Shown: positions 4,670-33,367 of the stretch, one piece after another
How positions within the stretch are numbered: the stretch's first letter is position 1
Layout: each line of letters starts with the position of its first letter
Origin: Gnetum montanum
Taxonomy: Eukaryota > Plantae > Gnetophyta
DNA: 64,000 nucleotides
Assembly: GCA_015680685.1 (NCBI GenBank)
Contig: MNCI01003125.1
Coordinates: forward strand, 100,923 to 164,922
Reading direction: 5' to 3'
Made by a program: the position numbers and the translations under genes
The notes under the pieces: generated by a model
The model's database searches: none
Told to the model about the DNA's origin: nothing
What the model saw: the letters and a program-made list of their open reading frames with translations, nothing else

Positions 4670-7600
4670 TCACATGTAGTACGGCTTGAGGTACAAGTGA
4701 TTCATCAGGTTTGTGAACTCGTTGCCATCCATGCCCGCTAGCTTGAAGGCTCCATTTCCAAAGGCTTTAGTGACCATGTATGGACCTTTCCAGTTGGCTG
4801 AGAATTTGCTCACATGCTTACGGATGACCTTGAGGATGAGGTCTCCCTTCTGTACTAGCCTTTGATGTAGGTTTGCATGATGTTTGTGTTGTTGCTTGTG
4901 TTGGTAGTGCTCTATGTGGCTCAATATTTGTGTGCACTCCTCCTCTATTAAGTCAAGGTCAATAATTCTCAACTTGTTGTTCTAGGCTTCGCTCATGACA
5001 TTAGATAGGATCATCTGGACTGACGGTACTTGCAACTCAAGAGGCAACATAGCTTCAGATCCATAAACAAGACTATAAGGGGTCTTACTTGTCATGGTCC
5101 TACATGTCGTTCTATAGGCCCATAGAACATAGAGGATTTGCTTGTGCCACCACCTCTTATTATTGCTAAGCATCTGCTTCAGCAAGTTGATGATGGACTT
5201 ATTTGTAGCCTGCACCTATCTGTTCATCTACAGGTAATACGGGGAGGAGAATGATTGCCTAATTCCAGGATTGCTACTGAAGGTTTAGGTTTTCGTACTA
5301 CTGAATTGTGGTCCATTGTCGGTTACGATAGTTATTGGAAGCCTAAACCTTGTCACAATGTTGTCTAGAATAAAATGGCAAACCTGCTGAGATGTTGTCT
5401 TCCTCAGGGGGATAGCTTCCACCCACTTAGTAAAATACTTAGTGGCAGTGATAATGAAGCTATGCCCTATAGAGGACTTATGTGTGATAGGTCCTATGAG
5501 GTCTAGTTCCCATTATTGGAAAGGCCACGTGATTTGCAATGTGTGCAGGTCCATAGGTGAGACGTGTACGAGATTTGCATATCTCTGGCATGTGTCACAT
5601 GTCTTGAATTTTGGCAAGTATTCAGGCTCCATATGGAGCCATTAGTACCCTAGGCATCTAATTTTCATAGCCATAGCTCTAGGTGTTATGTGTCCACCAC
5701 ACAGCCCCTCATGTACTTCATTAATCACCTTCCATGCCTACTCCTTACCCATGCATGCTAGTAATATCCCATCATAAGAATGTCTACACAGGGAATCATT
5801 TCCCATGAGCGTATATTGCTAGGCATGCTTGCGGATTGCATCTCTTTGGGAAGATGTCAGTCTGCTTAGGGGTTCTCCATGTTGTAGGTAGGCTTTAATG
5901 TTGGCGTACCACTCCTGGGTATTCGTAGTGCTGATAGAGGTCACGTGTCCTACCTGAGTGATGGGCTCAGTACATTCAACAATCGAAGTTGATAGACTTG
6001 CAAACGAGTATGGTAGATATTTAGTGCTAGGGTGGCTAAGGTGTCTACCATGGTGTTCTCGTTGCATGGCACATGTTACACATCTATAGTTGTGAATTGC
6101 TTAAGCAAGCTTTTTGCTAGATCGTAGTAGGATTGTAGGTGTGTAGCTTTACAAGCATACACCTTGGTGACTTGATTCACAAATATTTGTGAATCCCCAC
6201 GAATTGCTAGGTGTTGTATGCATAGTGTTTGGGCAGCTAAGAGGACTCTAAGTAGCCCCTCATACTTTGCCACATTGTTGGTGCAGGGGAATGCAAAACA
6301 ATAAGCAAATGGGTGCATTTCCCTAGAGGGGAACATAATGACGGCAACTGCACTACCTCCTTGTGTGGTTGAGATGCCATCGAAGTGTAAAGTAGCTTCG
6401 AGGTATGATGGGATGCATTGATAGTACCAACATGCTCGTCTAGGAATTTGGAATCTATGGTTGCCTAGTCATTGATGGGTGAGGCTGTAAGTTGGGTTGC
6501 TATGGCTTGACCCTTTGTTGATGATTGGCTCACATAGTGTAAGTCGAACTTTGTGGTTATTGCTTTCCATTGGGCTATCCGACTACTTTCATACAAGTTG
6601 TTAGTAATAGCCCAGAGTATGTTTCTTTTGCAAATGATGTTAATTGTACTGTGAAACAGGTAGTGCCTCCACTTTTTTAATGCAAATACTAAGGCAAGAC
6701 AATTCCTCTCCACCTCATTGTATTTTGCCTCATGCACTATTAATGCATGACTCAGATAATACACTAGTATCTCATATTCGTCATCTTGTTTCTAACATAA
6801 CAGTGCTTCTATAGATGCGTTGGAGGTGGTAAGGTAAATAAAGAAAGGCTTATCCCTTTGTGGTGGATGCATAGTTGGGAGGTGAAAAAGCTCATTCTTT
6901 AGGTTGTTGAAGGCCTATTGACATTGGATTGTCCATTCGAAGTTAACCCCTTTCTTTAGAAGATGTTGCATGGGGTGTAACTTGTCAGTGAACTTTGCTA
7001 TAAACCTTTGAATGAACTGTACCCTACCTAGCAACCCATGTAACTCTTTAAGGTTTGTAGGAGGTACCAGGTAGATGATGGCCTTAACTTTGTCAGGGTC
7101 CACTTGATACTACGAACCCTAACATGCATCTGGTCTTCAAACCGAAGACACACTTCTTAGGATTAAGGCATAAATCATGCATTTGAAAACACTTAAGAAC
7201 TACCCCTAGATCACGTGGGTGATCAGCTACCTCCTTGGACTTGACCACTATATCATCCACGTAGTCGTTTAGCATTTCTAGGATGTAGTTGCTGAAGATG
7301 TAAGTCATGGCTTGCTGGTAGGTTGCTTCGACGTTCTTGAGCCCAAAAGGCATCATGGTGTAACAAAAGGTACCCCATGAGGTCATAAAGGTTGTTGTTA
7401 GCTAATGCTATGGGTTGATGTAAAGTTGGTTGTAGCCAGAGAAACCATCCATGAAGGATAATAGAACATGACCAGCCATAGTGTCAATGAGTTGATTGAT
7501 GCTTGGTAGTGGGAAATTGTCTTTGATTGTTGCCTTGTTCAGATCCCGTAAGTCCATATAGATTCGTATCCCTCCCATTTTTTTAGAAACTACAACAATG

Positions 7601-8133
7601 TTGGACACCCATTCCGAGTAATCAACTACATGATGAAATCAGCTTGATATAACTTAGTGATTTCATCTCTTACAGCTAGTGCAATTTCTGGTTTAACCTT
7701 ATGAGCTTTCTGCTTGACTGCCTTTGTGCGCAGGTCTAGGACAATGTTGTGCTGTATCAGCCACAGATCTAGACCCAGCATGTCCTTGTATAACCATGTA
7801 AAGACTTTGATGTTATCTTGCAGAATCTTGGCTACATTTTCATGTGTCTACACATCTAGGAGGGAGCTAAGTTTTAACTTTCTTTTTCCCCTTGGATGTG
7901 GTAACAAGCATCTCGACAAGAGGATCCTCAGTTACATCCCTAGCCTCTAAATCTAGGATTCGGACTAGATGTTCAGGCTAGTCTAGGGATGTTTTTAAGG
8001 ATGCTATGGTGTTAGTTGTGGTTGGCCCCTAGTCGATTAGATCTGGGTTCAATTGTCTTGCGAGCTTGCCATGTGGACCTGCTAAAGCTAAAGGCGTGGA
8101 GAGATCATGATGGATTTCTATCTTTTGCTCAAC
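4670..8133 (-). pseudogene. pol: pol of A: RT, RNase H, second (archaeal-type) RNase H, integrase; many stops and frameshifts
   Basis: DLNKA..KDNFPLP, LSFMDGFSGYNQ, MPFGLKN, YVDD, LNPKKCVFG; E..CLALVFALKKWRHY; TNNVA.YEGL..GDSQ..VNQ; LWAYRTT...TPYSLVYGSEA.LPLE; KFSANWKGPY. Confidence 0.95.
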
Positions 8134-8745
8134 CTATCAAAATGAGATGAAAGCCTAGTTAAGAGGCACATGTTGGTAGTAATTATGTGTAACAAAAACT
8201 TGCAAAGCAATGACAAGAGGTAACTAGCGAAGTATGATGTAAAGATTAAAATTTTTCCAGTTTAAAGTCATGGCAGATTGTTGTGGCATGGAGATGTAGA
8301 GATGCTAAAACAAGGAATGTAAAATTGTCGATGTGAGAAAGTGAAACTCCTAAAAAATGCAAAACTGTCAACGTAAAAATGTGAAACTGCTAGTTTAGCA
8401 TCATTGCGGACTGTGAACGCGTAACAGATCAAAATTGCTAGTTTAAAGTCTTTTTGGACCATTAACTAAAGTGTAACACTATGCTAAAAATGCTAGTTTA
8501 TGGTCTTTTTGGACTGTGAAAGTTACAACTACGTTGGGATTACTAGTTTAAGGTCTTTTCAGACCCATAACTAACAAAAAACATTTTTTTTCATTATTTG
8601 GGAAAGAAAAAAGTTAGCTTGAAGTGTGCCAAGGTTTTAATGCCAAGAGTGCTCTGAGGTTATGGAGAGCATGCTACGCTACATGACGCACTCCACATTA
8701 AACAAAGAGAGAGAGTGGCAAGTTTTCCCTTTTCATCATTACAGT

Positions 8746-8768
8746 CATAAATAGGGATTAAACCCTGG
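8746..8768 (+). promoter_or_regulatory. TATA box plus telo-box-like motif upstream of the antisense gene
   Basis: cataaatagggattaaaccctgg in A; TATAAATAGGGATTAAACCCTAG in C (44892-44914, -); ~150 bp upstream of ATG ATG (G/C)CT CCA AAG. Confidence 0.6.
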
Positions 8769-8903
8769 TAAGCTTGTCATTCTAACTGTAAGAGCGCAAA
8801 GCCCATATTTGGAGCACAAAGTGATTTCAGAGTGTAAAGAAAGTGTGCTAACAATGAGCAAGGCAATTTTTTGCATAGCGACTAGGAAAAGCCTACAAAC
8901 AGG

Positions 8904-11900
8904 ATGATGGCTCCAAAGAAGGAATGCACTCACTTGGAACTCGCAAAGGTCGAGGAGGTAAAGAAAACCCTAGGGTGTGTGACACAAGCATGTGTGATGG
9001 TGCGGAAGGACACACTATTGACTCAGTAGGCTGCTATGCTTCCTTTGCTTCCTCATGATTCTATTATCATTTTTGTTTTCTACTTTCATTTTGTGATTCA
9101 GTTTTAGTTATTCATGTTTTCTATCATCGTGTTGTCATTGTTTTGGCCTTTGCACCATCGTTGTTGCCGTTTTGGCCATGGTGGATGCATAGACACTACA
9201 CTGACATTGCATGCAAGGTCACCTAAACTGCCACTGCTATGGTTGTCATAACTATGGGGGTTTGGATAGTTTAGGTTACTTGGCTTTTGAATGACGTAGC
9301 GTAGGACCCTCAAGAGGGTTTGGCCATGTGTGATGTGATAGTGCGACACGTGTTTTGTTAGGGCATATTGTTAATCGCCCTGTTAGAATTAATCGCTCTG
9401 TTGCTATGGTAGGCTATTTTTCATGTTCTTGCTATGTTACGTGTGGGAAGAGGGTTATGCTACGCTATATGCATGAAATGCTAGGTATTGCTATGTTGCG
9501 TATGCATTGCACTTGGACATGATGCTAACACTTGCTAGTTGTGTCAAACAAGATGGGGCTAAGGCCAATTCTAATTATCTTAGAAATTGTAGGGGTCCTG
9601 TGTTACGTAGGAAAACCTATAGCCAATGTTCCTCCTCCCAATATACGTGTGGGGGAGCAGGGGGTTTGGTTCAGGAAAGGAGCATAGGAGTTCCTACAAT
9701 ACCTCCTCCAACACTTCAATGTGATCGTTTGGTCATACCTAGAGGAGGAAGAGGCAGCTATCATAACAGAAGCCCTCTTTCCTGGGGCAAGCTAGGGCAT
9801 CCTGAGGTTTTTGACGGATGGAGCAATCTTTAGCAGGCAAGGAGAAGGATCCAGTCAATGCCCCATAGAGTTAAGGCATTTGGCCTGGATCTAGGATATG
9901 CCTAAGTATAGTTGCTACCATCCTTACAACATATTATTTGTTGCACATTATATGGCAACGTGCTTCCAAAACCCACCAAGGACTGTCTACTTTGTTGGCG
10001 GGTGAGTTTTGTAGTCCTGTTCCACTGTATTGTGTGATGCTTGCTATATTAGCCAAACACTAACAGTATATTTTTGTTACTAGGTTCTACATCAACAAGG
10101 ATAATATGGATATCCCAACAGGAGTTCTTTTCTATTGAGAACCTCTGTGCAGGTGTGATCGGTCAATGCGGGGGTGAATACCACACCTACCTAGATCTAT
10201 ACCCCATTCCCTACAATAGGTGCAAGGAGCGTGGTTGGTTGGATGAGGGATGGACACCCTTCAAACTGATCACTGTTGAACAATTTCTAGTTAGTCTCCC
10301 ATGGTTCCCATTGCTGTAAAGACCTGGTAAGCTAAATAGTAAGTGTATGCATGCTTAAGTGTCTTTGCAATCTTTGGATTTTCTATGTTTTTATGCTAAA
10401 TGTTTCTTGTGAAAATTTCTGCAAGGGCGAAAAAAGCCCTGGAGGTGATGGTGGTAACCGCCGAGACACAGGAGGCAAACATCTACTTCAACTACAAAGA
10501 AGTAGATGCAAGCCAATGTTGGATAAATGATGTGGCTTTAGACTCCTTGGTCCAGAATATCCAAAAGGCTAGGCTTATGGATCTATTCTTGGCCCCAAAT
10601 ACAAGCGTTCCTACCATCGAGATGCTCTCCCTGGTCAACTCCTTTTCCGACAAGGCAGGCCACTTCCACATGCACATATAGGGCTTACGGGTGGTCATTG
10701 AAATCAATGACCAACTATTCATAGATATTTTCGATGTCCCTATTGATGGCATCCTCATAGGATCAAAGTCCAAGAAGGAGCTAACCCTTCAGAAGAAGGA
10801 CATCTAGGAGTGATTAGGGATTAACAAGGAGTAGAAGGGGCTCCCCATGAAGAAGCTTAAAGCAGGACCTGCCAGGGAGGTTTACCCTATCTTCTGTGCT
10901 CACACATTTTCCTAGTTGCTTTCCCAAGGGAAGTTCCTAGGGATTGAGCAGGCTTGGATAATGCATGAGGTCATGGAGGAAGGGGCCCACTACAACTGGG
11001 TTAATTTTTTGTGTAAAGGCTTGCAAGCTGAAATTTTGGGGCTTCATAAGAAATTGGAGTCTTGTTCCAATATACATTATGCCTTTTACATAGCTTGTCT
11101 GAAGCATTTCATAGAGTTTCTGGTAGTTCATGAGAATGGAACCTGGGTCATGCAAAATCGTGACCAGATTTTTAGACCGTGGATCTGCTAGATCCTCCAG
11201 ACCACTTGAGCCCAAGACCCCCCATAAATAATTAGGGAGTCATTCTCCGTGATGAATAAGGATTGAGTGGTTCACAACTTTTATGGCCAAGATAGCATAG
11301 GAGAGATGTCCCTCGTTGTAGCCAGTAGCGTATCATGGGGGGAACATCTCATAGCCGAGATTGTAGTTAGAAAGTTGCAGTGGAAGAGGCCTCTTCTAGC
11401 TAAGGAAACCCTTCACATGGAGGAAGAGGAGGGGTGGAGACTACAACTTAAATTGCAGAGGATGCAACCCCCCATTGGTAAATTCTTTTGTTCATGTTTA
11501 TTCCTTGGCTTACTTTGTTAATGCCTACTACGCTGTGCTACGCTAGACTGTGTAGCATAGCATAGCACCTACTTTAAGCTAACCTATTTTGAGCTAATGA
11601 AAACATGATTCTTGGCTGACAAAAGAAGAAGAGGAAGATGAAGAAGGTGATGAAGAGGTGTTGGCCCCTAAGATGGGGGTAATGAATAAATACACTGAGG
11701 CCCTACGTCACGGAAGAAAGGGCCTCGGTAAAGAAGAAAGAAGCTCCTGTCGCTAAGGTAGGGGCTCTCATCATTAGGTAGAATCCTCCTACTAATGAGG
11801 AGGGAATTTTTGAGGATGAAGAGGAGTCTCCCTTGAATAAAAAAGATGTTGGTCTCTCAAAAGGAAAGGCACCAGTGCATGAAGAAGAGGCTTGTACAGA

Positions 11901-13329
11901 CTTGGTAGGGACCTCTGCCAAGGCTACCACCATCGTTTTGCATCAATAGGAAGGGGGGATGCAATTGGATGTTGGTGAGTTTGGCAATATTTCTACCTTT
12001 TCATAGCCCATTTCAACCATTTTTGATACATTTAGTTATATGATAGGTGCCACTATTGATGCTGCAAGACCCCCTCTAATTCATGTAGAATCATGAGCTG
12101 AGATCCTTGATAAGTTTACATTCATGCAGGGAATCATTGACAACATGATCAATTGCCTTTAGCAGGTGGACCTTGAAGTGGGTAAGTAGTAGTGTTAGGT
12201 GCTCTCACGTTTCTATGCTAGAGTTTTCAAATTTGTTAATCTTCATTACACTAATGCAATTGACATGATCTTTGTGTCTTGGTAGCCTCTTGGCTCAAGT
12301 GGGACATGACATGTCCTTTGAAAGTTGGTGTTGTGTCTACATTCCTGCCTAAAGTGACTAAGGTATCTTGTCACACATACAAAAAGGCTTGCAAATTTGC
12401 TTTGCACTCAACATGCTCCTTGTGGGAGTATAAGTGCATCAACGAGGACCTGTGGAAATGGGTCCAGAAAGCTAAGCAAGAGAAGGTCAACCTAAGTATC
12501 GAGGTGAAGGATCTCAAGTCGAGGAACAAATTCCTCATAGCCCATGAAACTAATAATGAGGACTGGCACATGGCTATGATAGATTACACCAGATTTTGGA
12601 TAGCCGTGCATCAGAACTTCGAAGCCACCCACGAAATAATGGAACAGTGGATGCAAATGGACTTGTTAGCCCAGAAATGTTAGGATTTGAAAGATTTTAG
12701 CACCAAGGTTTATGAATGCGGGAAGTCCCAGAAAATCCATAAAAATATGTATAAACTAGAACATGCCACCTATCGTAAACTATACAGGGACGCTACTGTG
12801 GAGGCGTTTATGTATAAAGCATTCATAAATGCCATTGACATTTTTGAGGCCTATGCCAAATTCAAAGAGTAGGTAAAGGTTATAGAATCTCCTGACTAGA
12901 AAGTGGACCTTCCCATAGGAGAGACCGCAACTGTCTTCTTTTCTCCAGGACCACCAAGGTGGAAGAAAGCTGACAGGGAGAGAGTTGCTGCAGATGCTAA
13001 TCCAAGCAATAGGTGTTGGGTGGACATCACAACAGAAGAGGTCTGGCATCGCCTCGAGCTCAGTTTAGACCAGATACCCTTTGAGATGGGTGCAGGTCAA
13101 TCCCATGTTGGTTGCTTTCTACTATATTAATGCTTATGCTTTGTTGTAGCTTGCATGCATTGCTTTAGCTGACCACTTCATTTCTACAATGCAGGCTCTA
13201 GATGAGGGTGCAAGGTCCATAGAGGGAAGGAATGAAGAGTTGGCAAAGGAAAATGTAGGGGAAGGAAATGCAAAAGGAGGTGATGTAGAAGTGAATGGTG
13301 AAGATGATGTGAATAGAGACAACCTGTGA
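8904..13329 (+). pseudogene. Antisense multi-exon accessory gene of A: FCP1/NIF-like pseudophosphatase + plant-transposon-type domain + acidic linker + coiled coil
   Basis: Start MMAPKK; exon ~9552-10001 reads RPILIILEIVGVLC..VWFRKGA*EFLQYLLQHFNVIVWS..LRHLAWI*D..YNILFV..FQNPPRTVYFVG; GT-AG intron 10002-10083 with cactaac branch site; further introns at ~10327-10424, ~11480-11621, ~12182-12285 and ~13108-13168; ends ..NRDNL*. Confidence 0.8.
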
Positions 13330-13505
13330 TAGCATGGGATTTTTTTTTTGAAATTTTGAGTTTTTGTAAAATTTTTGCAAACATCGCTTGAAAGGCATTA
13401 GTTTTGAATAAAGAAAAGAGAATTTCGGGAAAAGAAATTGATTTTGCGCTAACTCATGCATTGTGTATGTGTTATGTTTTATGTAAAATTTTCATGCTTT
13501 TGTGT

Positions 13506-13640
13506 GCTAGTTTCAGGCCATTTTGGGCCACTGCTAGTTTTAGGCCATTTCGGGCCTTTGCTAGTTTTAGGCCATTTTGGACCTCTACTAGGTTTAGGCC
13601 ATTTTGGGTCTCTGGTAGTTTTAGGCCATTTCAAGCCTCT
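13506..13640. repeat. 27-bp tandem array (5 units, gctagttttaggccatttcgggccwyt)
   Basis: Directly visible; homologous arrays in B and C. Confidence 0.95.
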
Positions 13641-13803
13641 ACGTAGCGTGCCAAAGAGATGATACGTTAACAGCTTGAATAACAACTAATTGGTAACTTT
13701 CGTAGACAGATGGATGCAAACAATGAAAGATGGTAATGTAAAAAGGATGGAGACTAGGCAGGAAGCAGCGAGGTTGCTACACTATGCATAGCTACTTCTT
13801 GAC

Positions 13804-16800
13804 CCATCATGGGTTGAGTGGAATGTAAGGCTGAGGTGCTTTGCCAGGGCCTTCATTTGCATCATTATCCTCCACTTGGAAGGGTAACTCAACCCACACA
13901 CTTTCATTTTGGTAACCAGCTTGTTGAGTTGATTCCCCTGCTAGATGGTTAGTGTCTGCGTAAGTAGGTGCTTCATTCTCAAAGGTCACAACCTCTGAGC
14001 CCTACTCCATGTCTATGTTATTGATTGCTTGTGCTGCTACCTCGTCACCATGGATCACCACCTCCCTGCTTGCGTATGGTAGGTGGATTTCCTAGTGAAT
14101 GGGCAAAGAGATAGCCCTAAGTTATGCTAACCATGATCTCCCCAAGATCAGGTTAAACCCAGGCATCTCCTCGACCATGATGAACATCATGTTTGTGGGA
14201 AACTGATCCCCTTCTATGAAGTCTATGTGGATTGTGCCTTTCATCATGACCCGCGTCCCATTGAACGACCTCAGGCATGACATTGCTGTGGATTTGATCT
14301 AGTTGACCAAGCCCAACATATCCACAATAGGAAAGGGGATGATGTTCGTGGTAGCCCCATCATGAATGTGTACCCTTCGAATCTGATGTTGGCTGACCCA
14401 AATTGTTATGAACAGGGGTGCTGTAGTCACCTAGCCCCTTTCGGGATCTTCCTTGATAGCGTCATTGTAGAAAGTTAGTTGAGACTATTCTGGCTCTACA
14501 AGTTTGGAGGGGAGCATGACCGAGTGGATCGCTTCCTCTTCTACTAGCATGTCTTCGCTGACCGGAATTACTATTAACATGTGGATCAGAGCCTCACAGT
14601 GTGGGATGGATGTCATGATTAGGTCGTACAAGCTCAACATAGTATTTTTCTATTTTAGAGTTTGTTTGACCTAAGTGAGGGCATCTAATAGGTCTTGGCT
14701 ACCCCCTATTTAACACTTTCATCCTCTTCTATTCATCCCATAAGATGAATTTCTCAAGGAGGGAAAATTTTGGGTCTGGGCTCAGACCCTTCTTAGTAGG
14801 GCGATGTGGACTGTATAGTTATAGCGACATCCCTCTTCGGTGATGAGGGCATAGATGTAGGGGGTGAAGATGTAGGCTTGGAAATACCAGGGGTGGTACT
14901 TCCTCTTGATGTTTCACCTGTGAAATGCACTTCCCATTTTTTAGGAAGAGAAGGTTGTTCAACTGTCTTGCATGGGATGGAGGCTATCGGATGAGTTGGC
15001 CCCCTAATGATAAATGGAGCTAACGGTGTTAACAAGCGGGGTGGCATGGTTCTGCTAATAGGTGGTGTAGGGATGGATGCTTGGGGAGGAACCCCTAGAA
15101 CAAATGATTGTTGCAAACTTCGGCCAGCCACTAGTGGTGCAAGTGCACTATGCTGAGGCACATTGACCATGAACAGTTGCTGGGATGGTGTAGGATCACT
15201 GTTAACATCAATGGTATTGATAACATAACTGGCATTGTTGGTGTTGAGGGGGTCTATGTAGAGATGCAGAGATTGATTCTCAGGGCGTACTAGGTTGCTT
15301 TCGTCCAACATCAGTTTCCCCTAATCAATCATCCTTTGGATGTCATCCTTCAATGCCAGACAGTAATCCAGGTTGTGACCACATTGTTGGTGGTAGTTAC
15401 AAAACCTATCTAGCCTGAAACCTGTAGGAACTGGGGGCTCATTGGGTAGGGCCAAAGAGGGGTTCCTAAGGAGCTTGTAGTAGCGTTGATGTCTCTCGAT
15501 CCCTTGTTTCGACATCTGCTTATGTTGGATGTGCCCCGCTTCCAATAGTTGCTTTAGAAGTTTTGAAGGCTTGAGAGGTAGTGGGGTGTACTTTGAGTGA
15601 TCTTTCCGCTCAAAGTTTGGTTTTAGTTGTGCGGATGTCTCAGGTGTGGGTATGAAAGGTTGCTGCACATTGCTGTGCTTGGGTGTGGGATTGGCTATGG
15701 GTACGACCAGTTTCTTGTTGTTATTGTTACCATTGTTACTAGGTTTGGGCTTGGCCTTAGTCACCATAGCAACCACTATGGTTGTTGGGACCTTACCCTT
15801 ATCCTCCTTTGCAAAGCTGTTTTTGTAGGCGACATAGGCTAGGTATTTTCTTTTCTTGGTTGCATCCTATATACTCAGTCTGAGTGAAGGCTTGACTAAG
15901 AGTGCGAGGGGTGAGGTAGTATAGTTTAGACTTGATAAAGTCATTCACTACATCCTTAAAGATGGCCAACAAGTGGACCTCTGTGATGGGCTCACGGATT
16001 TCATTAAGGGTTGCACTCCAACGCTGGATGAACTTCTGGACTGGTTCCAAAGGATCCTGCTTCACACTCATCAACTGATCCAGTGTAGTTTTTGCCTTCA
16101 AGTTATACTTGAAGCACATCACGAACTCGGTCAAAAGCTTCTCTAGAGTTGAAATAGATGAGTGTGGCAGCATGCGGTACCAATCTAAGGCTTTCTCAGC
16201 TAGGGACATAGCAAAGACATGGATAATCATGTGTGGCCATTGTTGCAATAGGAGGGATTCAGACCTAAAGATAACAAGATGTGCATTGGGATCTCCCTCC
16301 CCATTGTACTTTGCCAAGTGAGGAAGGGACATCCCTGGGGGTAACGTGAGCACAGGGATTGCAGGGCTGATAGGGTTGTCCTGGTAAAAGTCCATGACTT
16401 GTACCATGTCAGACCTGACAACCTTGAGGCATTTTATTTCCTTGATAAGGATTTGGATAAGCTGGAACACTTGGTCCAAACCTTGCGATAATGTGGATGG
16501 TTGGGGAACTATCGAGGTAGCTCCCATCTGTGGAATGGTAGGGGTGGGAACATGACCCATTGGTGGTACCATTGGGATAGCCCCCGCAAACGGTGCTACT
16601 TGTGCTATCCACCACTTGGTAGGTGGTGCTGTTGGAGTAGCAACCGTAGCTTGGGCTTCTTGATAAATCGCTTGTGTCACCCGTGGAACAGACCATAGCC
16701 CCATGTTCGGTTGTACTGTTTGTGCGGTTTGGTAGGTATGAGGGCGAACATAATGAGACATTTGTGATGGTTGTGGAATAGGTGAAGAAGTGAACGGGGT

Positions 16801-17595
16801 CTACCATGTGGATGGGCTCAGGCCCACCATAGTTGGTGAGATGGATGTAAATGTAGGAATGGAAACGGAAGTTGCATACGACTGTGAAGTAGGTACGGTA
16901 TGAACATGTGGGAGGGTAGCCATGATTGGTGTGTGATGTGCTACAAGAATGGGCTATTAAATGGTTTTCAGAGGCATAGTTGTTGCAAATGAAATAGGGG
17001 AATAAGGACATTGATATGTTGGGAAGGTGACATGGCTACCCATTGCAGTTATAGTCATAGGCTGTGGGAACATAGGCGTGATCACAAAGGGAGTGGTGAC
17101 AGACAACGGATTGGCCCAGAAGGACTAGGTAGGAGGGATCGTAACGGGGTTGGCCTGACCTTCCCCTTCAAATTGAGAATAAAGCTCCTCTTATCCATCT
17201 TATAAGGTCTTTTCATGGTTAGACATTGTGTCCTACTACTCTCTAAGCCTAGCCAACTAGATTAGCTGGTCTAGAAGCCATTGATTCATCTATGTCAAAG
17301 GTATGGAAGCGCCAGGAGTGGGAGAAAACTCCTTCCCATCATAGTAAGAAAACTCGAAGCTATGTTTTTCTTTGAATTCGTGCACATGCAATGGAAAGTT
17401 TTCCTAAACCTTTGCACAGAGGAAGTTATAGTGCTCATGTTGCTGGGCCAAGCCCTCAGGTCCCCGATTGTGGTTCCTAAGGGATCAACATGTTTTCAAT
17501 GTCGGGTTGAGCGGTTGTTCAGCACCTATGATACCTTGAACCATGATGGGAACTTCAATGTTGAAGGTGTTAGCAGCGATAGTTGCGGAAGTCAT
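13804..17595 (-). pseudogene. gag: gag-protease of A
   Basis: KYNGEGDPNAHL..F, SLAEKALDWY..LP..SIST (retrotransposon gag); Tat/Ogre-type knuckle C-x2-H-x4-H-x4-C (CNYHQQCGHNLDYC); protease RV.(V/I)(D/H)DGA..N and FNLILGRSWL at ~14130-14390; Pro/Thr-rich N-terminal part. Confidence 0.92.
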
Positions 17596-18012: not shown

Positions 18013-18344
18013 TATAGCAACCAAAAACGTCGGTGGCTAGAAAACACTAAGAGGTTGCCAGTCATTGACAGCCTTAAACCCATATCTGTGCGAGGGCCAT
18101 GCTTGATGAAAATGGAAATGGGGTGCCTTGAACAGTTTGGTCGATCAAACAGGGACTTAGTCAGTGTTAATATAACCTTTCATAAATAGATAATTTGAAA
18201 ATGATACCTCTAGCATAAAATGATAACTTTAAATGCAAGAGGGATAGAAAACAATGTAAAAATGCAATGATAAGAAAGAAAGAAAAGTAAAGTGCAGTTA
18301 GAAAAATGCACCACTTTATGATTATGACTTCACTCTGTCAAAGG
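18013..18344 (-). repeat. 5' LTR of A, part 1 (interrupted by B)
   Basis: Matches 1186-~1517; adjacent to the PBS. Confidence 0.93.
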
Positions 18345-20271
18345 TGTAGCGATCGAAAACATTGGTGGCTGGAAAACACTGAGGGGTTGATGGGCACGAC
18401 AGTCTCAACCCTGTATCTGCGCGAGGGCCATGCTGGGTGTGGGTAGATACGGGGCGCCCTGAATGGTTTGGTTAATCAGACAGGGACTTAATCAGCATCT
18501 ATATAGCCTTTTGCAACATATGGTTTTGAAAATGGGGAAGAAAACGTGAAATAATGCTTGAGAGTAAATAATGTAGAAAAAATAGTGCAAAACACAACAA
18601 TAAGCAAGAAACAAGTTAAAATATAGTTAGAAAAATGCATTGCTCTGAAGTTACAAATTTGCTCTTTCAAGGTGGATACAGTCAGTTGCATAGCGTGGAG
18701 GAGTGCAGAGATCCTAAGAGTAAACAAGATGTGTAGAGAAAAATAGGTTGTATGCTTGGGCGCAGCCTTGGGCGCTGACAATGCAGGGATTCTACCAAGG
18801 TGGTAGAAAGGGAGACAGAACAAAATACCAACTAAAGATGCTAATTGTTTGCAGTGTCAAATTGAAAGCTTACAATGCTCAGTGCTCAATGTTATGATTC
18901 TTGCTTTTTTTATTGAACCTCTAGAGATAGTGAAAAACACAACAATAAGTAAGAAACAAGTTAAAATATAGTTAGAAAAATGCATTGCTCTGAAGTTACA
19001 AATTTGCTCTTTCAAGGTGGATACAGTCAGTTGCATAGTGTGGAGGAGTGCAGAGATCCTAAGAGTAAACAAGATGTGTAGAGAAAAATAGGTTGTATGC
19101 TTGGGCGTAGCCTTGGGCGCTGACAATGCAGGGATTCTACCAAGGTGGTAGAAAGGGAGACAGAACAAAATGCCAACTAAAGATGCTAATTGTTTGCAAT
19201 GTCAAATTGAAAGCTTACAATGCTCAGTGCTCAATGTTATGATTCTTGCTTTTTTTATTGAACCTCTAGAGATAGTCCAACCCTTTGAGCACTGCTCATC
19301 AGGGTATTTATAGGGTTGAAGGGCACCTAAAAGGGATGGTTTGGATGCCACATGCCCTAGGCCCATGTTAGGTTGCTAGCGCCACACGTGCCATGTATGA
19401 CCATTGGACCTATAAGACCATTGTAATGCAATCTTGTTATGTCATAACTATGAGCCTGCCACATCGTAATTACATCGTCAGCATCTGGAGACATGTGCCA
19501 ACGGTCCAATGAGGTTAAGTGCATTGATGTTGCACAACCACCCACATGCCTTGCTGTGCTTTATAGTGTAGCATTCTTAGCGTAGTGTAGCACCTTGTCA
19601 CATGTTCCACTACATGTGTGTTGCATACTTGCTACATTATGCTATGCTACGTAGTGTAGCAACTGGCCTTAGTTGTGAAAGCTTTGCCAATTTACAAAAT
19701 TTGCTTCCTATGATGCAAGACTTTGCAAACTTTGAGCTACATTTTGTCTCTTTCGTAGGATTGCTACGCCTCACTGTGCCATGTAGCTCAGTGTAGCGTA
19801 GCAGCAGACATGGTCTGCTACTTCTTGACCGAAAGGAACATTGTTAAAGGACTTGAAATTGGGTGAGGGGAATGGTTATAAAGTTGTTGCCATGCTATGC
19901 TATGTCACGTATCATAGCGTAGCATAGCACTTCATTCTACAATCATATTCTTAAGCTTGCTATGCTACATAGCGAGGCATAGTGTAGCGTAGTAGACTTC
20001 GTGACTTAGAAAACTTGCCAAACTATTTCATGCATTTGGAATGCTGATACCAACTCCGTGCATCATTGCTAAACAAGCTGTCGGCTGGGTAGGCTACTTA
20101 GGTGGACAGGCAGGATGACCTATAGAGCTTGTTTACACGTAAAGTAGAAAATTTTCTGAATTGACCAGCTTGAATTCAGAGCATTCTCCTCCAGAAGAAC
20201 TACTGTAGTGTTTGCGTGAATTGTAATGCCTGGTGAAGCAAGAATGACTTCATAATTTTTTGGGTGTTTCA
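18345..20271 (-). repeat. 3' LTR of B
   Basis: tgtagcgatc...tgtttca followed by the PPT; homologous to 33368-34931. Confidence 0.95.
18582..19276. repeat. 345-bp tandem duplication inside the 3' LTR of B
   Basis: Units 18582-18926 and 18927-19271 are nearly identical; ATAGT occurs at all three borders; absent from the 5' LTR. Confidence 0.95.
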
Positions 20272-21466
20272 TTGGCCCCTCTTTGTCGACGTTTGGAGGA
20301 CAGGCTCGATAGACATTGACAAAGAATACAAAACACCGTAGCAGGAAAAAAGCTAAGGTTGTCGCTCGGTGAGTGTCAAGACATCACTTGGCCACACTTG
20401 AGAGTGTTGGATTGGTTTTGCAGAGGTTAAGGTAGAGAGAAAATATGATGTTTAGTAGAGTCCCTTGTTGGAGTGCTCATGAGGGACTCCTTCACATTTT
20501 CATCTTTGGCTGGTGCTGTTCTTCAACCTCTCATAGGACCGGTGTTTCCTTCGCAAGATGAGTTGCATTACATTTTTGAAGATTTTTGACCTACCTACAA
20601 ATGCTTTCCATTCAACGAGTTGTGTTACGCATGTCATGGAATTTGCACTCTGAAGTAGCTGAGCTAGTTGAGGCACTCACTTTATGACACTGTAGCATTT
20701 GATGTTGTTGCGAGCCATGCCCGCAGGGGCAAAGGTCTTGTTGGCTGCTAGCATTGTTAAAGTTTTTGGGCATCGTTGCTAGCATGTGATGTCCAAAGTA
20801 GGAAGGCCAGTAGCAACCTTGGTGGCACCAGCATAGAGGAGCTAGCCTCGAAGGTCCCGGGGGTTGTTTTGAGTGTGGATGCAATAGAATCCCTGCCAAG
20901 GAAATGCATTCTCAGTTTAGCTATGGGATTAGCTACCACATAGTTAAAAATCTTGGAAGCTGAGGTGTTGGTAGGGGGCTGGAGAGTAATAATATTGTGG
21001 TTGGGCCATAATACTGCTGGAACTCCAACTGTGGGAACTAGCCAAGGATCTACCATCAAGGCGATGGGCCGTGGTGATGGTAGGTCTGGAGGGCTAGTAT
21101 AATGCCATACGACATCTCCAGAGGGTCAACATGTTACCAATGGTGATGGCATTGCGTGTGTCCCGGACCGCATTCTCATTGCGTCGTGAACTGCATTCCA
21201 GAGCTGTGATGTCCCACCCACACGTCAGCATTGTGCATGCTCGTCTGATGCATAATTGGCATAGATGCATGCTAGGGATGTGATGTGAACCCAGTTTAAG
21301 GTCTTGGTAGACCGTATGCTAGTTTAATGTCCCAATAGACTGTACATGCCAGTTTATCATCGTAGCGAATGGGTTGTGCCAGTTTTAGTTTAACGTCATT
21401 GTGGACGTTGCTTAGTGGAGTTGCCAGGTTATCTTCGTAGCAGATGGTGGTGGCTACCGTTGGGCC

Positions 21467-24280
21467 TCAGACGTAGTATGGCTTGAGGTATGAGTGATTC
21501 ACCAGGTTTGTGAACTTGTTGTCATTCATGCCCACCAGCTTGAAGGCTCCATTCCCAAAGGCTTTAGTGACTATGTAAGGACCTTCCCAATTGGCTGAGA
21601 ATTTTTTCATGTGCTCACGGACGATCTTGAGGATGAGGTCTCCCTTCTACACTGACCGTTGATGTGGGTCTGCATAGTGCTTCTACTGCTACTTACTCTA
21701 GTAGTGCTCGATGCATCTTAGCATCTGCGTGTGCTCCTCCTCTATCAAGTTGAGGTCAATGATCCACAACTCGTTGTTTTGGGCTTTGCTCATGATCTTG
21801 AATAGGATCATTCAAAGTGATGGTACCTGAAACTCAAGAGGCAACACAACTTCAGATCCATAAACAAGACTATAAGGGGTCTTACTTATCGTGGTCCTGC
21901 ACATCATCCGATAGGCCCATAGAATGTAGAGGATTTTCTCATGCCACCACCTCTTGCTGTTGTTAAGAATCCACTTCAGCAAGTTGATGATGGACTTATT
22001 TGTAGCTTTCACTTGCCTGTTCGCTTGTAGATAATAGGGGGAGGAAAATGATTGTTTAATGCCTAGATTGTTGCAGAAGGTTCGAGTTTCCGTACTACTG
22101 AACTATGACCCATTGTTGGTCACAATAGTCATTGGAAGCCTGAATCTGGTTACAATGTTGTCCAGGATGAAATGGAAGATTTGCTGAGACGTTGTCTTCC
22201 TTATGGGAATGACTTCCATCCACTTAGTAAAGTACTCAGTGGTAGTGATAATGAAACTATGCCCTACGGAGGACTTAGGCGTGATAGGCCCTATGAGGTC
22301 TAATCCCCATCGTTGGAAGGGCCATGTGATTTGTGTTGGGTGTAGGTCTGTAGGTACTGTGTGTATGAGATTTGTATATCTCTGGCACGTGTTGCACATC
22401 TTGAATTTTGACAGGCAGTCACGTTCTATGTGGGGCTAGTAGTACCCTAGGCATCTAAGTTTTGTAGCCATAGATCTGGATGCTATGTGTCCACTGCACA
22501 GCCCCTCATGCACTTCATTAACTACCTTCTACACTTGCTCCCCACCCACGCATGCCAACAATATCCCGTCATAGGAATGTCGGCACAAGGCATCATTTCC
22601 CATGAGCACGTATTGTTAGGCACACCTATGGATTCCATCTCTCTGGGCGGATGTCAATCCACCTGGGGGCTCTCCATGTTGTAGATAGATTTTAATGCTA
22701 GCATACCACTCCTGGGTATCTATAGCATTAATAGAGGGCATGTGTTCCACCTGAGTGATAAGCTCTACACATTTTATAATCAAGGTTGGTAGATTTTCCA
22801 AGGAATGTGATGGAATGTTTAACACATTTGTCATGGTATTCATGTTGCATGGCACCTATGGTACATCTGTGGTTGCGAACTGCTTAAGGAGGATTTTTGC
22901 TAGGTCATAGTAGGGTTGCAAGTGCATAGCCTTGTAGGCATGGATTTCAGTGATTTGATTCACAACTAGTTGTGAATCTCCCTGGATTACCAAGTGTTGT
23001 ATGTGTAGTGCTCAAGTAGTTAAGAGGCCTCTAAGTAGCCCCTCGTATTCTACCATGTTGTTGATGCAGGGGAACACAAAATGATAAGTGGATGGATGTA
23101 TTTCCCCAGAAGGGAATGTGATGACGGTAGTGGCGCTACCTCCTTTTGCGGTTGAGGCACCGTCAAAGTGTAAAGTGACTTCAAGATGCGATGGGACAAT
23201 GTCAATATTGCTAATGTGCTCGTCTAGGAATTTTGGGTCTATGATTGCCCAATCATCAACTGGTGAGGCTATGAGTTGGGTTGCTATGGCTTCACCCTTT
23301 GTCGATGATTGACTTACATAGTGTAAATCGAACTTCATGATTATTACCTTCCATCAGGCTATCTTGCTACTTTTGTATAGGTTGTTAGTGATAGCCCAGA
23401 GTATATTGCTCTTGCAAATGACATTGGTAGTGTTGCAGAATAGGTAATGCAGCCACTTTTTTAGTGTGAATACTAAGGCAAGGAAATTCCTCTCCACTTC
23501 ATTGTATTTTGCTTCATGTGTTATTAGTGCATGGCTCAGATAATACACTAGCATCTCAGAACCATCGTCTCACTTTTGACATAGCAGTGCCACTACAGAT
23601 GTGTTGGAGGTGGCGAGGTAGATAAAGAAGGGTTTATCCCTTTGTGGCGGATGCACAGTCGTGAGGTGCGAGAGTTCCTTCTTCAGGTCATCGAAGGCTT
23701 GTTGACACTAGGTTGTCCACTCCAAGTTAACCCCTTTCTTTAAATGATGTTGCATGGGATGTAACTTGTCAGTCAACCTTTCTATGAACCTTCAAATGAA
23801 TTGTATTCTACCTTGCAAACCACGTAACTCCTTAAGGTTTATGGGGGGTTCCAGGTTGATGATGGTCCTGACTTTGTCAAGGTCCACCCTTATTCTGGCC
23901 TTTGATACTATGAACCCTAACATGTGTCCAGTTTTCACCCCAAAGATGCACTTCTTAGGATTGAGGCATAAGTCATGCGTTTGGTAGCATTTGAGGACTA
24001 CCCCTAGATTGTGTGGGTGATCAGCTACCTCCTTGGACTTGACTGCTATGTCATCCACGTCGTCGTTTAATGTTTCTAGGATATAGTCACTAAAAATGTA
24101 AGTCATGGCTCACTGGTAAGTTGCTCCAGCATTCTTGAGCCTAAAGGGCATCATGATGTAGCAGAAGGTCCCACATGGGGTCATGAAGGTTGTTGATAGC
24201 TGGTGCTCTGGATTAATGTAGATTTTGTTGTATTCAGAGAAACCATCCATGAAGGATAGCAGAGCATGTTCGATCATGGT
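21467..24280 (-). pseudogene. pol: pol of B (N-terminal part of RT deleted)
   Basis: LSFMDGFS, VDDIAVKS, LHFDGAS (aRH), WPFQRWGLDLIGP (INT); homology to the RT of A stops abruptly at ~24280. Confidence 0.93.
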
Positions 24281-24623
24281 TGCATGCAAGGCCACTGAAA
24301 CTACCACCACTGCGGTCATCATAACCGTGGGGGCTAGGGCAATTTAAGTTACTTGACCCTTGCATGTCATAAGGTAAAACCCTTAGGAGGGCTAGGCTGT
24401 GTGCAATGCGGCAGTGCGATATGTGTTTTTCTAGGGCATGTCATCAATTGTTTTGTTGCCACCTTAGGCAATCCGCATGTTCTTGCTATGCTAGGCTTTC
24501 ATGCCCTTGCTTATGTGTGGGCAGAGGGTTATGCTATGCTATATGCATGAACTACTAGGCATCGCTATGTTGCATGTGTATTGCCCTTAGTGTGATGCAA
24601 ACATTCACTAATTGTGTTGTGCA

Positions 24624-27600
24624 GGGCGGGGCTAAGGCCTAAGTTGATTATTTTGAAAATTAGAGGGGTCTTGTGCCATGTGAGAAGATCTGTGGCCAAT
24701 GCTCCTCCTCCCCAGATACATATGGGAGAGCGAGGAGTTTGGTTCAGGGTAGGGGCATGGAACTTTTTGCAATTCCTACTTGACCACTTTAGTGTGATCG
24801 TTTGGTCCTCCTTGGAGGAGGAGGAGGCATTCGACATAACAGAAGCCATGTTTCTTGGGGCAAGTCAGGGAATTTTGAGATTTTTTACCGATGGGGCAAT
24901 CGTGAGTAGGCAGGGAGAGGGATCCAGCCAACATTTAGTAGGGTTAATGCGTTTAGCCTGGATCTAGGACATGCCTGAATACAACTGCTACCACCATTAC
25001 AACACATTGTTCCTCGGATGTTACATGTCAACGTGCTTTTAGAACCCATAGGGGACTATCTATTGTGCTGGCGGGTGAGTCTTGCAACTTTGTGTCACTA
25101 CGTTGTGCAATGTTGGCTATATCAGCCAAATGATAATAGTACATGTTTGCTACCAAGTTCTTTATCAATGATGATGGGGTTCATGATTGATCAGGTCTAT
25201 TGGCTATAGCACAACTAGCCTTATAGGAATTCTCTTCTACTAAGAACCTGTGGGCGGGTGCGATCGGTCAATGCGGGGGAGAGTACCATACCTACCCAAG
25301 CACATTTCATGTTCCCTATAATCAATGCAAGGAGAAGGATTAAAGAAGTTCTGGTTGAACTCCCATTGTTCCTATTATCATATAGGCCCAGTGGGTCAAA
25401 CAGTAAGTGTCGTATGCTCTAATTTTTTGGCAATCCTTGTATTTCTTGCATCATTATGCTAAGTGTGTTTTGTGAAAACTATTATAGGGGCAAAGAAGCC
25501 CTAGGAGGTGATGGTAGTATCTGTCGAGACGTAGGGGGTGAACATCTACTTCAAATAAGGTGAAGTAGAAGCAAGCTAGCATTGGCTAAACCATGGGGCC
25601 TCAGACTCCCTAGTCTAGAACGTCCAAAATGTGGGGCTTTTGGATCTGTTCAAGGCCCTGAATTCGAGCGTTCCTGCTACTGAGATGCTCTCCCTGGTTA
25701 ACTCCTTCTCTAAAAGGGTGGGCCATTTTTGCACACATATATGGGACATGCAGGTGGTCATTAAAATTAATGACCAGCTATTTACAGACTTGTTTGGTGT
25801 TCCTGCCGATGGCCTCTTCATAGGGTTGAAGGGAAAGAGGGAGTTGACCCTTTAGAAGAAAGATATCGAGGAGTGATTGGGGCTTGTTAAGGAGTGAAAA
25901 GGGCTCCCCATGGATAACCTTAAGGATGGGCCTTCCATGGAGATTTACCCCATCTTCCATGCTCATGCATTCCCCCAACTGCTTACCCAAGGGAAGGTCC
26001 TGGGGCTTGAGCAGGCCTAAATAATATGCGAGGTTATGGAAGAAGGGGCCCGTTACAACTAGGCTAGTTTCCTATGTAACAACTTACAAGATGAGATTTT
26101 GGGACTCCATGAGAAAATGGAGTTCCACTCCAACATACACTATGCCTTCTACATAGGTTGTCTGAAGCACTTCGTGGAGTTTCTGGTGGTTTAAGAGGAT
26201 GGAGTCTGGGTCATGTGAAATTGCAACTAGATTTCCAGGTTGTGGATTCACCATGTCCTCCAAACCACACACAAGACCAAGATCCCATAGAAATAATCAG
26301 GGAGTTCTTATCTATAACGATCAAGGATCTGGTGATTCACAATGTTCATGGCTAGGATAGCATAGGAGAGATGCCCCCTGTTATAGCCGGTAGCATGACA
26401 TGAGGGGAACGTTTCATAGCTGAGATTGTGCCGAAGAAGTTGTGAAGGAAGAGGCCTCCCCCAGCCAAGGAAACCCTTCGTGTGGAGGAAGAGGAGGGAC
26501 AAAGACTATGGCTTAAGCTGTAGAGGACACAACCCCCCATTGGTAAATGCTTTTGTATAATGCTTACTCTATTATTTTTTTCTATGTTATGCTATGCTAG
26601 GCAGTGTAGCGTAGCATAGCATCTGCTTTTAATTAACTTATTTTGGATCAATGCAAACATGCTTCTTTGCTAGCAGAGGAAGAAGAAGAAGAAGAAGAAG
26701 GTGATGAAGAAGTGTTAGCCCCTAAAACAAGGGTGACGAATGACGACATGGAGGCCCCAGTCTCACTGGAAAGGGCCCCAATCAAGAATAAAGGAGCTTC
26801 TATCTCTAGGACAAGGGCTCTTGTTATTAGAGAGCCTCTTTCTACTAATGAAGAGGCATCTCCCTTGAATAAAAAAGATGCTAATCTTCTGAAAGAAAAG
26901 GCACCAGCACATGAGGAAGGTGCTCGTGTAGACTTAGTAAGGCATTCCACCAAGGCTACCGCCATCGTCTTGCATCAGCAAGAAGTAAGACCATAGCTAG
27001 ACACTGGTGAGTTTGGTGATACGTCTGCCTTGTCATGGTCCATTATGGCCATTGCTAATATGGTTAGTCATGTAATAGGCACTACTGCTAATGCTGAAGG
27101 ACCTCTTCCAATTTGTGTGGAGTCATGGGCTGAGATCCCTGACAAGTTTGCATTCATGCAATGACTTGTCAACGACATGATCAAACATCTTCAGCAGGTG
27201 GACCCTGACGCATGTAAGTAGTCGTGTTAAGTACTCTTATGTTGCAATGCTAAAAATTTTTGAGTTTGTTGATTTTGGTATACTAACGTGATTGCTATGC
27301 TCTTTGTGTCAAGGTAGCCTCTTGGCTCAAATGGGACCCGATGCAACCTATGAAAGTTGGCACCGTGCCTACACTCTCACCTAACATGATCAAGGTGCCT
27401 TGTTGCATGTTCGATGAAGCTTATGAGTGCATCTTGCATTCGGCACACTCCCTATGGGAGTATAAGTGTGTCAATGAGAACTTATGGAAATGGGTCCAAA
27501 GGGCTGAGTAAAGAGAGGCCAACCTGGTCACTGAGGTAGAGGATCTCAAGTCGAGGAACAAGTTCCTTGCAACCCGTAACCCTAATAATGAGGATTGGCA

Positions 27601-28362
27601 TACGGCTGTAGAAGACTATGACAAGTTTTGGACTTTCCTTCATCAGAATGTTGAATCCACTCGTGAGATAATTGAATAGCAAATGCAGATGGACTTGGTA
27701 GCCTAGAAGTGTTAAGACATGAAATATTTTAGTGCCAAAGTTTTTGAATGGGGGAAAACCTAGAGAAATAACAAACACGTGTACAAGCTAGAGAATGACA
27801 CCCATCGAAAATTGTACAAAGGTGCTGCTATGGAGGCATTCACATATGAAGCATTCATGAATTCCATTGACACTTCTGAGGCCTATGCCAAATTCAAAGA
27901 GTAGGTAAAGGTTACGAAATCTCCTGACTTAAAAGTGGACCTTCCCATAGGAGAGACTGTGACCGTCTCCTTTTCCCTGGGACCTTCAAGTGGACGATCA
28001 TGGAAAGGGAGAGAGTTGCTATTGTGGCTACTAAACCTAGCAATAGGTGTTGGATGGACATCATGACAGAGGAGGTTTGGCATTACCTTAGGCTCGGTTT
28101 AGACCGAATACCCTTTGAGACTGACGCAGGCCCTTCTCAAGTTAGTTGCTTTACTGTGTTGGTGTTTATGCTCTATTGTAACTTGCATTTGTTGCCCTAG
28201 CTGACTGCTTCATTCCCAAGATGTAGGCTCTAGATGAGGGTGCAAGGCTCGTAGAGGGAGGGAATGAAGAATTGGCAAAGGGCAACATAGGAGAAGGTAA
28301 TGCAAAAAATTGATGGCACAAAGGTGAGCGGCGAAGCTAATGTAAATAGAGAAAACCCATGA
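24624..28362 (+). pseudogene. Antisense accessory gene of B (promoter and first exon deleted)
   Basis: ORF 24614-24967 RPKLIILKIRGVLC..WFRVGAWNFLQFLLDHFSVIVWSS; intron 25075-25156; acidic stretch EEEEEEEEGDEE at ~26675-26710; colinear with A. Confidence 0.8.
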
Positions 28363-28538
28363 CTGCATGGGAGTCTCTTTTTTTTCTTTTTTTTTTTAAA
28401 TTTTGAAATTTTGAAATTTTGTACAAGTTTTGCAAACATTGTCAACAGGTGAAAGTTTTGAATGGAATGAAAAACTTCAAGAAAGAAATTGATTTTGCAT
28501 TAACTTATGTATTGTGTAAAGTTTCCATGCTTTCATAT

Positions 28539-28722
28539 GCTAGTTTTAGGTCGTTTCGGGCCTTTGCATAACATGCCAAAAGAATTGTATGTTAATAAAG
28601 AAAAACAAAACAATGCTAGTTTTAGGCCATTTCGTGCCATTGCTAGTTTTAGGCCATTTCGGGCCATTGCTAGTTTTTGGCCGTTTCGGGCCATTGCTAG
28701 TTTTAGGCCGTTTCGGGCCATA
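28539..28722. repeat. 27-bp array of B (1+4 units)
   Basis: gctagttttaggccrtttcgggccatt units. Confidence 0.9.
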
Positions 28723-28837
28723 ATGTAGCATGCCAAAGAATGGCATGTTAGTGAAACAAAAAGTAATGAATGTGTATGGGCTGGCAAGTGGGTGGGAAGT
28801 AGTAGAGTTGCTAGGCTATGCATAGCTACCTCTTGAC

Positions 28838-32576: not shown

Positions 32577-32659
32577 TGCAAGCTAAATAGTTTTGTAGAA
32601 AAGTGCAACAAGTGCAAAAAGGAAAAAAGAGATTGAAAGGAAACAAAAAGAAGGCTTCA

Positions 32660-33310: not shown

Positions 33311-33367
33311 GAACTATCATGACATGTGAAAAAGGCACCAAAGGCCCTCCTTCTAGTGCCAGAAAAT

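Follow-up and report, generated by a model that had tools for sequence, protein, structure and literature searches.

In a 64,000-nucleotide stretch of the Gnetum montanum genome (contig MNCI01003125.1, positions 100,923 to 164,922 of the forward strand; hereafter the window, in whose own numbering all coordinates are given), we found LTR (long terminal repeat) retrotransposons that carry a multi-intron gene on their opposite strand, between protease and reverse transcriptase (RT). Self-comparison and Pfam scans showed the window to be a nest of Ty3/gypsy elements of the Tat type, four of which (A, B, C and D) share the domain order gag-protease, gap, RT, RNase H, second RNase H, integrase, and the same opposite-strand gene lies in the gap of A, B, C and the diverged D. 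The gene has its own predicted TATA-like promoter, at least seven introns and a predicted poly(A) signal. We consider it likely that these copies represent a Tat/Ogre-type lineage in which an accessory gene is built into the element, antisense in the protease-RT gap, and has been passed on by retrotransposition under purifying selection, with the gap itself acting as an Ogre-type intron and the gene encoding a NIF-like, non-catalytic protein.

Element A is a full-length element on the minus strand, with LTRs at both ends. Its gag (15802-16800, located by Pfam scan) and protease (C-terminal motif at 14125-14298) together occupy 14125-16800, and the protease frame extends to ~13807. Coding picks up again at ~8133 with RT (~8133 to 7096), followed by RNase H (RT_RNaseH, 6468-6791) and the second RNase H (RVT_3, 6079-6468), these three covering 6079-8133 with integrase-homologous sequence below them; a second RNase H (aRH) between RNase H and integrase is the mark of the Tat clade (Ogre/Retand type) in REXdb. 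Between the two coding blocks lies a 5.7-kb gap (8134-13803, on the element's minus strand), and within it, on the plus strand, the antisense gene (8904-13329). The same gene is found on the minus strand of C (40311-44756) and on the plus strand of B (24596-28313), where its 5′ end is missing. A sequence-only reading of the window had proposed both the gap in A, B and C and the opposite-strand gene at these positions in A and C, and comparison of the copies bore out both proposals.

That reading had also placed homologues of the gene in D and E. In D the homologue does lie in the same position and orientation upstream of RT, but only the first large exon, the NIF-like one, is left (52538-53106, minus strand, running from 53106 to 52538). 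E (62650-63880, plus strand) is likewise a homologue, with GC-rich exons and AT-rich introns, but it is 5′-truncated and rearranged by internal duplications, and as far as the window shows its context is not a gag-protease/RT gap, since ~480 bp, free of pol, separate it from an LTR terminus. This setting may point to a derivative that is internally deleted or non-autonomous, or to a fragment of the gap gene within an LTR. We rejected E as an intact young copy in view of its truncation and duplications, its open frames on both strands reflecting its GC content. Positions 61630-61772 align at 72%, without a change of orientation, with the outermost part of A's LTR (1186-1332), and by that match E would lie ~480 bp inside a minus-strand element. 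E further shows a short duplication (62560-62660) and a second copy of 63462-63581 at 63880-63998.

The evidence supports the gap gene being an inherited part of the element rather than a later insertion. Self-comparison showed the gap sequence to be collinear and equally placed in A, B and C, with ~84% identity between A and C (83-85% in the flanks) and ~74% between A and B (75-78% in the flanks). B (18346-34931) is a separate insertion with its own LTRs inside the 5′ LTR of A, and its target duplication (AAAGG/AAATG) is distinct from that of A (CTGAC/CTGAT, 5 bp). We favor inheritance because the gene's place and orientation agree among three separately inserted elements and the far more diverged D, because divergence of the gap tracks that of its flanks, because the constraint on the antisense protein resembles that on gag and pol, and because intron positions are kept between homologues that share only 43-48% of their residues. 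The earlier argument that the introns do not imply a later insertion of DNA is thus supported by common position and orientation, flank-matched divergence and separate target duplications. The suggested check for an independent transposon pointed the same way, in that self-comparison revealed no copy of the gap outside these elements except E.

Translated comparison of the copies revealed one plus-strand frame per block, which was conserved also in D and E. Over 688 concatenated exon codons, the ratio of nonsynonymous to synonymous substitution rates (dN/dS) between A and B was 0.249 (bootstrap confidence interval 0.19-0.32), compared with 0.72 and 0.91 in the two shifted frames and 0.44-0.65 in non-exon controls (introns and 3′ flank). 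The same method applied to the same pair returned 0.29-0.30 for gag, 0.28 for protease, 0.13-0.30 for RT, 0.11 for RNase H, 0.29 for the second RNase H and 0.26 for integrase; the gap gene is as constrained as gag and pol. A dN/dS below 1 had been named beforehand as support for function, and the A-B pair provides it. The signal resides in codon positions and not in total divergence, the identities of exons and introns between A and B (0.74 vs 0.70-0.75) being uninformative. For the pair A-C, dN/dS was near neutral for the gap gene (~0.5 in frame) and pol alike, as would be expected if most of the divergence between these two copies is decay after insertion. Between A and E, whose synonymous sites are saturated, exon 2 shares 54% of nucleotides and 48% of residues, compared with 18-22% of residues in shifted frames, and 76 of the 107 third positions differ, as opposed to 37 first and 36 second positions. 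With D and E, exon 2 has 43-48% of its residues in common.

All features of the gene model lie on the plus strand of A. A TATA-like box at 8746-8753 (CATAAATA in A and TATAAATA in C, consensus (C/T)ATAAATA) stands ~150 nucleotides upstream of the start, which reads ATG ATG at 8904 in A (MMAPKK) and at 44756 in C (MMPPKK), so that the TATA box and MM(A/P)PKK start described earlier were recovered in both copies. The stop codon is at 13327-13329, followed by a putative poly(A) signal AATAAA at 13407-13412. At least six introns have conserved GT/AG ends and consistent phase and at least one more is required, in line with the earlier count of about six short GT-AG introns. Exon 1 (8904-8974) ends at a phase-consistent donor, GTGTGT at 8975, and with this donor intron 1 is phase-consistent when joined to an acceptor AG/G kept in B and C (here and below the slash in a splice motif marks the junction); an alternative donor, GTAAAG at 8958, fits only the decayed acceptor of A. 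Exon 2 (9552-10001; A-B dN/dS 0.21) encodes the NIF/FCP1-like domain without DxDxT and is followed by intron 2 (10002-10083, phase 2), whose donor GG/GT(G/A)AG(T/C) occurs in A, B, C, D and E. In all five copies an in-frame stop directly follows this donor, and after a pyrimidine tract and AG coding resumes in another frame, the codon split by the intron being completed to glycine in the copies that were read across the acceptor (A, C and E). In E the exons have a GC content of 0.55-0.60 and intron 2 one of 0.31, and this intron cannot be aligned with that of A whereas the flanking exons can.

Downstream, exon 3 (10084-10338) is separated by an intron (10339-10424) from exon 4 (10425-11489, 3′ end approximate), which encodes a large middle domain and has an A-B dN/dS of 0.24 over 10430-11188. 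An exon with an acidic run (11623-11974) shows a weak coding signal and ends at a conserved donor, G/GTGAGT at 11975; it is followed by an intron (11975-12046), a short exon with consistent phases at both sides (12047-12181), another intron (12182-12285), a long C-terminal exon (12286-13106; A-B dN/dS 0.26) predicted to be helical and probably a coiled coil, a last intron (13107-13194) and the last exon (13195-13329). The GT/AG ends of these four introns are conserved in A, B and C, apart from acceptor decay in A noted below. The further intron is needed between ~11190 and 11622, where, as in the acidic exon, there is little coding signal and each in-phase GT that we tried creates a stop.

The gene had been called complete, which in the sense of intact it is not: copy A is interrupted by about a dozen in-frame stops, has lost 32 bp near 10101 in exon 3 and has gained 1 nucleotide by insertion, and its acceptors at 9551, 10424 and 11622 read AA where B and C keep AG. 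These AG-to-AA changes, together with the ~4:1 excess of transitions in the LTRs, are consistent with deamination decay of methylated DNA. A tandem array of a 27-bp unit (4.7 copies, 13505-13631) lies in the zone of convergence of the two transcription units, bounded by the gene's poly(A) signal on one side and the sense-strand donor on the other.

Searches for the identity of the protein were made exon by exon, on the copies' own sequence. NIF (PF03031) was the top Pfam match of exon 2 in 4 of 12 independent pieces, the alignment being weak and covering the N-terminal two thirds of the profile, and 30 of the 30 Atlas neighbours of exon 2 of copy E were NIF clusters (best 0.92, with 193 of 256 features shared). 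At the position of the catalytic motif DxDxT the copies read LEIVG (A and C), LKIRG (B) and MDLIH (D). Exon 2 therefore appears to resemble, weakly but consistently, the C-terminal domain (CTD) phosphatase domain NIF without its catalytic aspartates, and if the fold is NIF-like the protein would not be an active phosphatase but at most a catalytically dead relative. Exon 4 had no Pfam match, and its Atlas neighbours were unnamed plant clusters, with DUF1985 at rank 17 as a weak lead. No exon piece of A or E matched PMD (PF10536) or Transposase_28 (PF04195) in Pfam, and a word-index search with gag returned no named relatives. The C-terminal exon has a counterpart in D, in a second antisense gene (58566-61629, minus strand) that lies after integrase, in the classical position of 3′ antisense open reading frames (ORFs): 23% identity over 90 ungapped residues (E-value 1e-4) and 22% over 265 residues by tblastx, with D 59394-60188 weakly similar to A 12270-13064. 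This similarity suggests a possible relationship between the gap gene and the known 3′ antisense ORFs, and hints that the former is akin to the X-coiled-coil extra ORFs described from Tat elements (PMC4408406).

On the element's own strand, the gap looks like a putative giant Ogre-type intron, enlarged about twentyfold. A candidate donor GT lies at 13803-13802 (minus strand) in the context GG/GTCAAG, conserved in A, B and C, and a candidate acceptor AG at 8135-8134 (minus strand), conserved in A and C with a pyrimidine tract and ATAG/GTTG. The protease frame ends CCA TGA TGG/GTCAAG in A and C and CCA TGG CAG/GTCAAG in B, while directly after the acceptor (GTT GAG) a frame with recognizable pre-RT sequence begins in A and C, and D holds a motif related to this post-acceptor sequence. 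Joining 13803 to 8134 preserves the frame from protease to pol, and there is no conserved ATG at the start of pol. The gap is thus a GT..AG-ended stretch whose removal restores a split polyprotein frame, as in Ogre.

Several observations weigh against the overall reading. Every copy of the gene in the window has stops, insertions and deletions, and the gene model is tentative across 11190-11622 and at its 5′ end, where exon 1 is covered by A and C only. The minus-strand frame that shares third positions with the coding plus frame also has a low dN/dS (0.29-0.41), although always above that of the plus frame and with more stops. The NIF scores of exon 2 (15.9-16.5 bits, E-values 0.007-0.011) fall below the cut-off of 21.8; AlphaFold models of exon 2 (predicted local distance difference test score, pLDDT, 52.7) and of the start of exon 4 (42.4) were too poor to use, with Foldseek finding nothing meaningful for the former, in which a HAD-type fold was looked for; and sequence searches of the PDB yielded no relative, their only match, RACK1, being rejected as chance WD-repeat similarity. 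Beyond the window, no homologue emerged from a full HMMER scan of 1.84 billion representatives with the 198-residue exon of E, or from word-index searches with the 139-residue exon of A and the exon-2 alignment, whose length window means that they say little about longer kin. On the element's strand, an in-frame TGA precedes the donor by two codons in A (13807-13809) and C (near 39665) where B has TGG, and therefore a simple spliced fusion would in those copies need read-through, or pol would have to be made another way; the TGA may be shared decay, or may mark a sub-lineage that uses read-through or another route to pol. Lastly, same-species RNA reads mapped to 8400-13800, the interior of the gap inside the flanks of the sense junction, gave ~1x depth, came mostly from relatives of <90% identity, fell on both strands and contained no splice joints, a result that counts neither for nor against expression.

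Among these reads, loose ends at 11622-11658 were discounted because they stem from unrelated acidic repeats, and a poly-T loose end at 13340 was discounted as evidence because the genome has a T10 run there. In one run (X1), exons 2 and 8 (9486-9847 and 12382-12924) are heavily covered by reads of diverged relatives, with a strand bias of ~8:1 to 20:1, first mates falling on the minus strand, which would correspond to RNA in the sense of the gap gene if the library was a standard dUTP (deoxyuridine triphosphate) one.

How the gap gene came to be there admits other explanations. It could be a host gene transduced once into the protease-RT gap of an ancestor and carried along without a role: gene capture by LTR retrotransposons is known (PMC7264820), E is GC-rich with a gene-like contrast between exons and introns, and all copies here are dead. 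A useless 4.4-kb passenger, however, would be expected to decay or vanish in active lineages, whereas this one was constrained to the same degree as gag and pol across the divergence of A and B and its protein was kept as far as D and E despite saturated synonymous sites; moreover, protein searches found no cellular homologue. We regard an idle passenger as improbable. To the idea that a transposon or other DNA was inserted separately into each element we give next to no credence, since nothing was found in its favor, position and orientation are equal in A, B, C and D, divergence of the gap equals that of its flanks, A and B moved as whole units with their own target duplications, and the only additional copy in self-comparison is E. 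Scarcely more credible, and very unlikely in our view, is that the coding signal is an artefact of composition or of the element's own strand, with the introns being frameshifts in decayed sequence. The low dN/dS of one minus-strand frame and the A-C in-frame values near 0.5, mostly post-insertion decay, could be read that way, but both dN/dS and the number of stops are always lowest in the plus frame, tblastx matches to D and E are best in plus frames, the GT..AG sites lie on the plus strand with consistent phases, and introns are AT-rich and unalignable where exons are conserved.

A more serious alternative concerns the gap rather than the gene. It is possible, though we think it rather unlikely, that the gap is not spliced and that gag-protease and pol come from separate messages, by re-initiation or by an internal promoter back-to-back with that of the gap gene. 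The TGA that A and C carry two codons ahead of the donor would fit such an arrangement, as would the start sites of the gap gene and pol, which face each other head-to-head ~770 bp apart, and the length of 5.7 kb, about twenty times the reported Ogre average (PMC6317226). Yet all of A, B and C keep the donor, A and C keep the acceptor, the two frames meet without a shift, B lacks the stop before the donor, and pol coding begins precisely at the acceptor with no conserved ATG, all of which argues for the intron that we favor.

The remaining features of the window concern the elements and their history. The 1.7-kb LTRs of A are at 1186-2891 and at 18013-18346 plus 34932-36295, interrupted by B, and their inner edges show a polypurine tract and a primer-binding region. 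B has no equivalent of A 7470-9200, which comprises the N terminus of RT and the 5′ end of the antisense gene, and its 3′ LTR contains a 350-bp tandem duplication (18582-18931 and 18927-19276, 98% identical). C (36297-51812, plus strand) is truncated at its 5′ end at 36297. D (~52538-61630, plus strand), whose RT starts near 55375, shares 65% amino-acid identity with A in the RT core and 48% in integrase, and of the gap gene it keeps only the first large exon. The LTRs of A and B have diverged by 0.167 and 0.186, respectively (Kimura two-parameter distance), with transitions ~4x as frequent as transversions, and the divergence of the nested B is not below that of its host element A. A and B are old, decayed insertions, and all copies in the window are old and dead. 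Just beyond the 3′ LTR of C, between C and D, a 250-bp piece (51864-52110) has ~80% protein-level identity to the leader region of A (17214-17460).

Two known systems each share part of this architecture. In Ogre, as in the Gnetum elements, Gag is fused to protease and split from pol by a GT..AG-ended stretch, and a second RNase H lies between RNase H and integrase in a large element with large LTRs (PMC6317226, PMC4408406). Partial splicing of the short Ogre intron yields Gag-Pro-Pol (PMC6317226, PMC4408406). However, the gag-pro/pol gap of Ogre averages 274 bp (PMC6317226) and holds no gene, whereas that of the elements described here is 5.7 kb long with a multi-exon antisense gene, and splicing has been shown experimentally for Ogre but is predicted from sequence for these elements. 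The antisense ORFs of Tat/Retand elements (gene23 of Grande, RIRE2, Retand; PMD-CC/Tr28-CC) resemble the gap gene in encoding an accessory protein antisense to gag-pol, apparently from their own promoter and with a helical or coiled-coil C terminus. They differ in that they lie between pol and the 3′ LTR, not between protease and RT, and are described as continuous, with PMD or Tr28, whereas the Gnetum gene has at least seven introns and a NIF-like start. Antisense ORFs lie between pol and the 3′ LTR according to both the extra-ORF review and the Retand study, Ustyantsev et al. list the PMD/Tr28-CC ORFs as 3′ antisense or 5′ sense, and Ogre and EVADE are the only plant LTR elements with introns to be named in a 2025 review. 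Relative to the NIF/FCP1/SCP family (PF03031), exon 2 is weakly alike but scores below the cut-off and lacks DxDxT.

Keyword searches of the literature found no report of this layout or of a CTD-phosphatase as retrotransposon cargo, so the earlier remark that the architecture was not recognizable as a described one still stands for the literature searched. Spliced antisense genes of retroviruses, of which PMC11963269 makes mention, offer a further comparison. Human T-cell leukemia virus type 1 (HTLV-1) encodes the regulatory protein HBZ antisense to gag-pol and is alike in that respect, but a single intron and transcription from the 3′ LTR set HBZ apart from the Gnetum gene. What we regard as new is the position of the gene inside gag-pol, its multi-intron structure and its apparent NIF-like domain; its function and the splicing of the gap we infer.

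If the gap gene is, as we favor, built into an Ogre-type intron, unspliced RNA would serve both as genomic RNA and as the Gag-protease message, and splicing from the GT at 13803 to the AG at 8134 would join the protease frame to pol. On the genomic RNA the introns of the gap gene would read CT..AC, and so would not be removable and would be copied at each transposition. The proposal that the antisense orientation lets these introns survive reverse transcription, because they are not spliced out of the genomic RNA, is supported by their having been kept through independent retrotranspositions. The protein, estimated at ~1000 residues, would comprise a NIF/FCP1-like domain without catalytic aspartates, a large middle domain, an acidic stretch and a helical C terminus, and our best guess is that it may regulate, without catalysis, the transcription or the silencing of the element. 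A more elaborate version, which we put forward as a speculation with the odds against it, is that of a gene within an intron within an element: an independently promoted, intron-rich gene for a dead CTD-phosphatase-like protein would sit, in antisense orientation, inside the intron whose regulated splicing governs pol expression, the protein would benefit the element by targeting either RNA polymerase II or silencing by the host, and the gene's message, complementary only to unspliced genomic RNA, would add a layer of control at the RNA level.

General descriptions of plant LTR retrotransposons give them few introns and confine extra ORFs to regions outside the polyprotein. An annotation pipeline built on the expectation of an unbroken gag-pol would split elements of the kind described here in two or call the gap gene a host gene, and surveys of unspliced ORFs of at least 250 codons outside the polyprotein (PMC6317226) would miss it. 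The Gnetum elements extend the Ogre splicing strategy to a putative 5.7-kb intron and raise the possibility that a CTD-phosphatase-like decoy serves a transposon as an accessory factor, and they indicate that a host-style gene can be carried by a retroelement and kept up over many cycles of reverse transcription.

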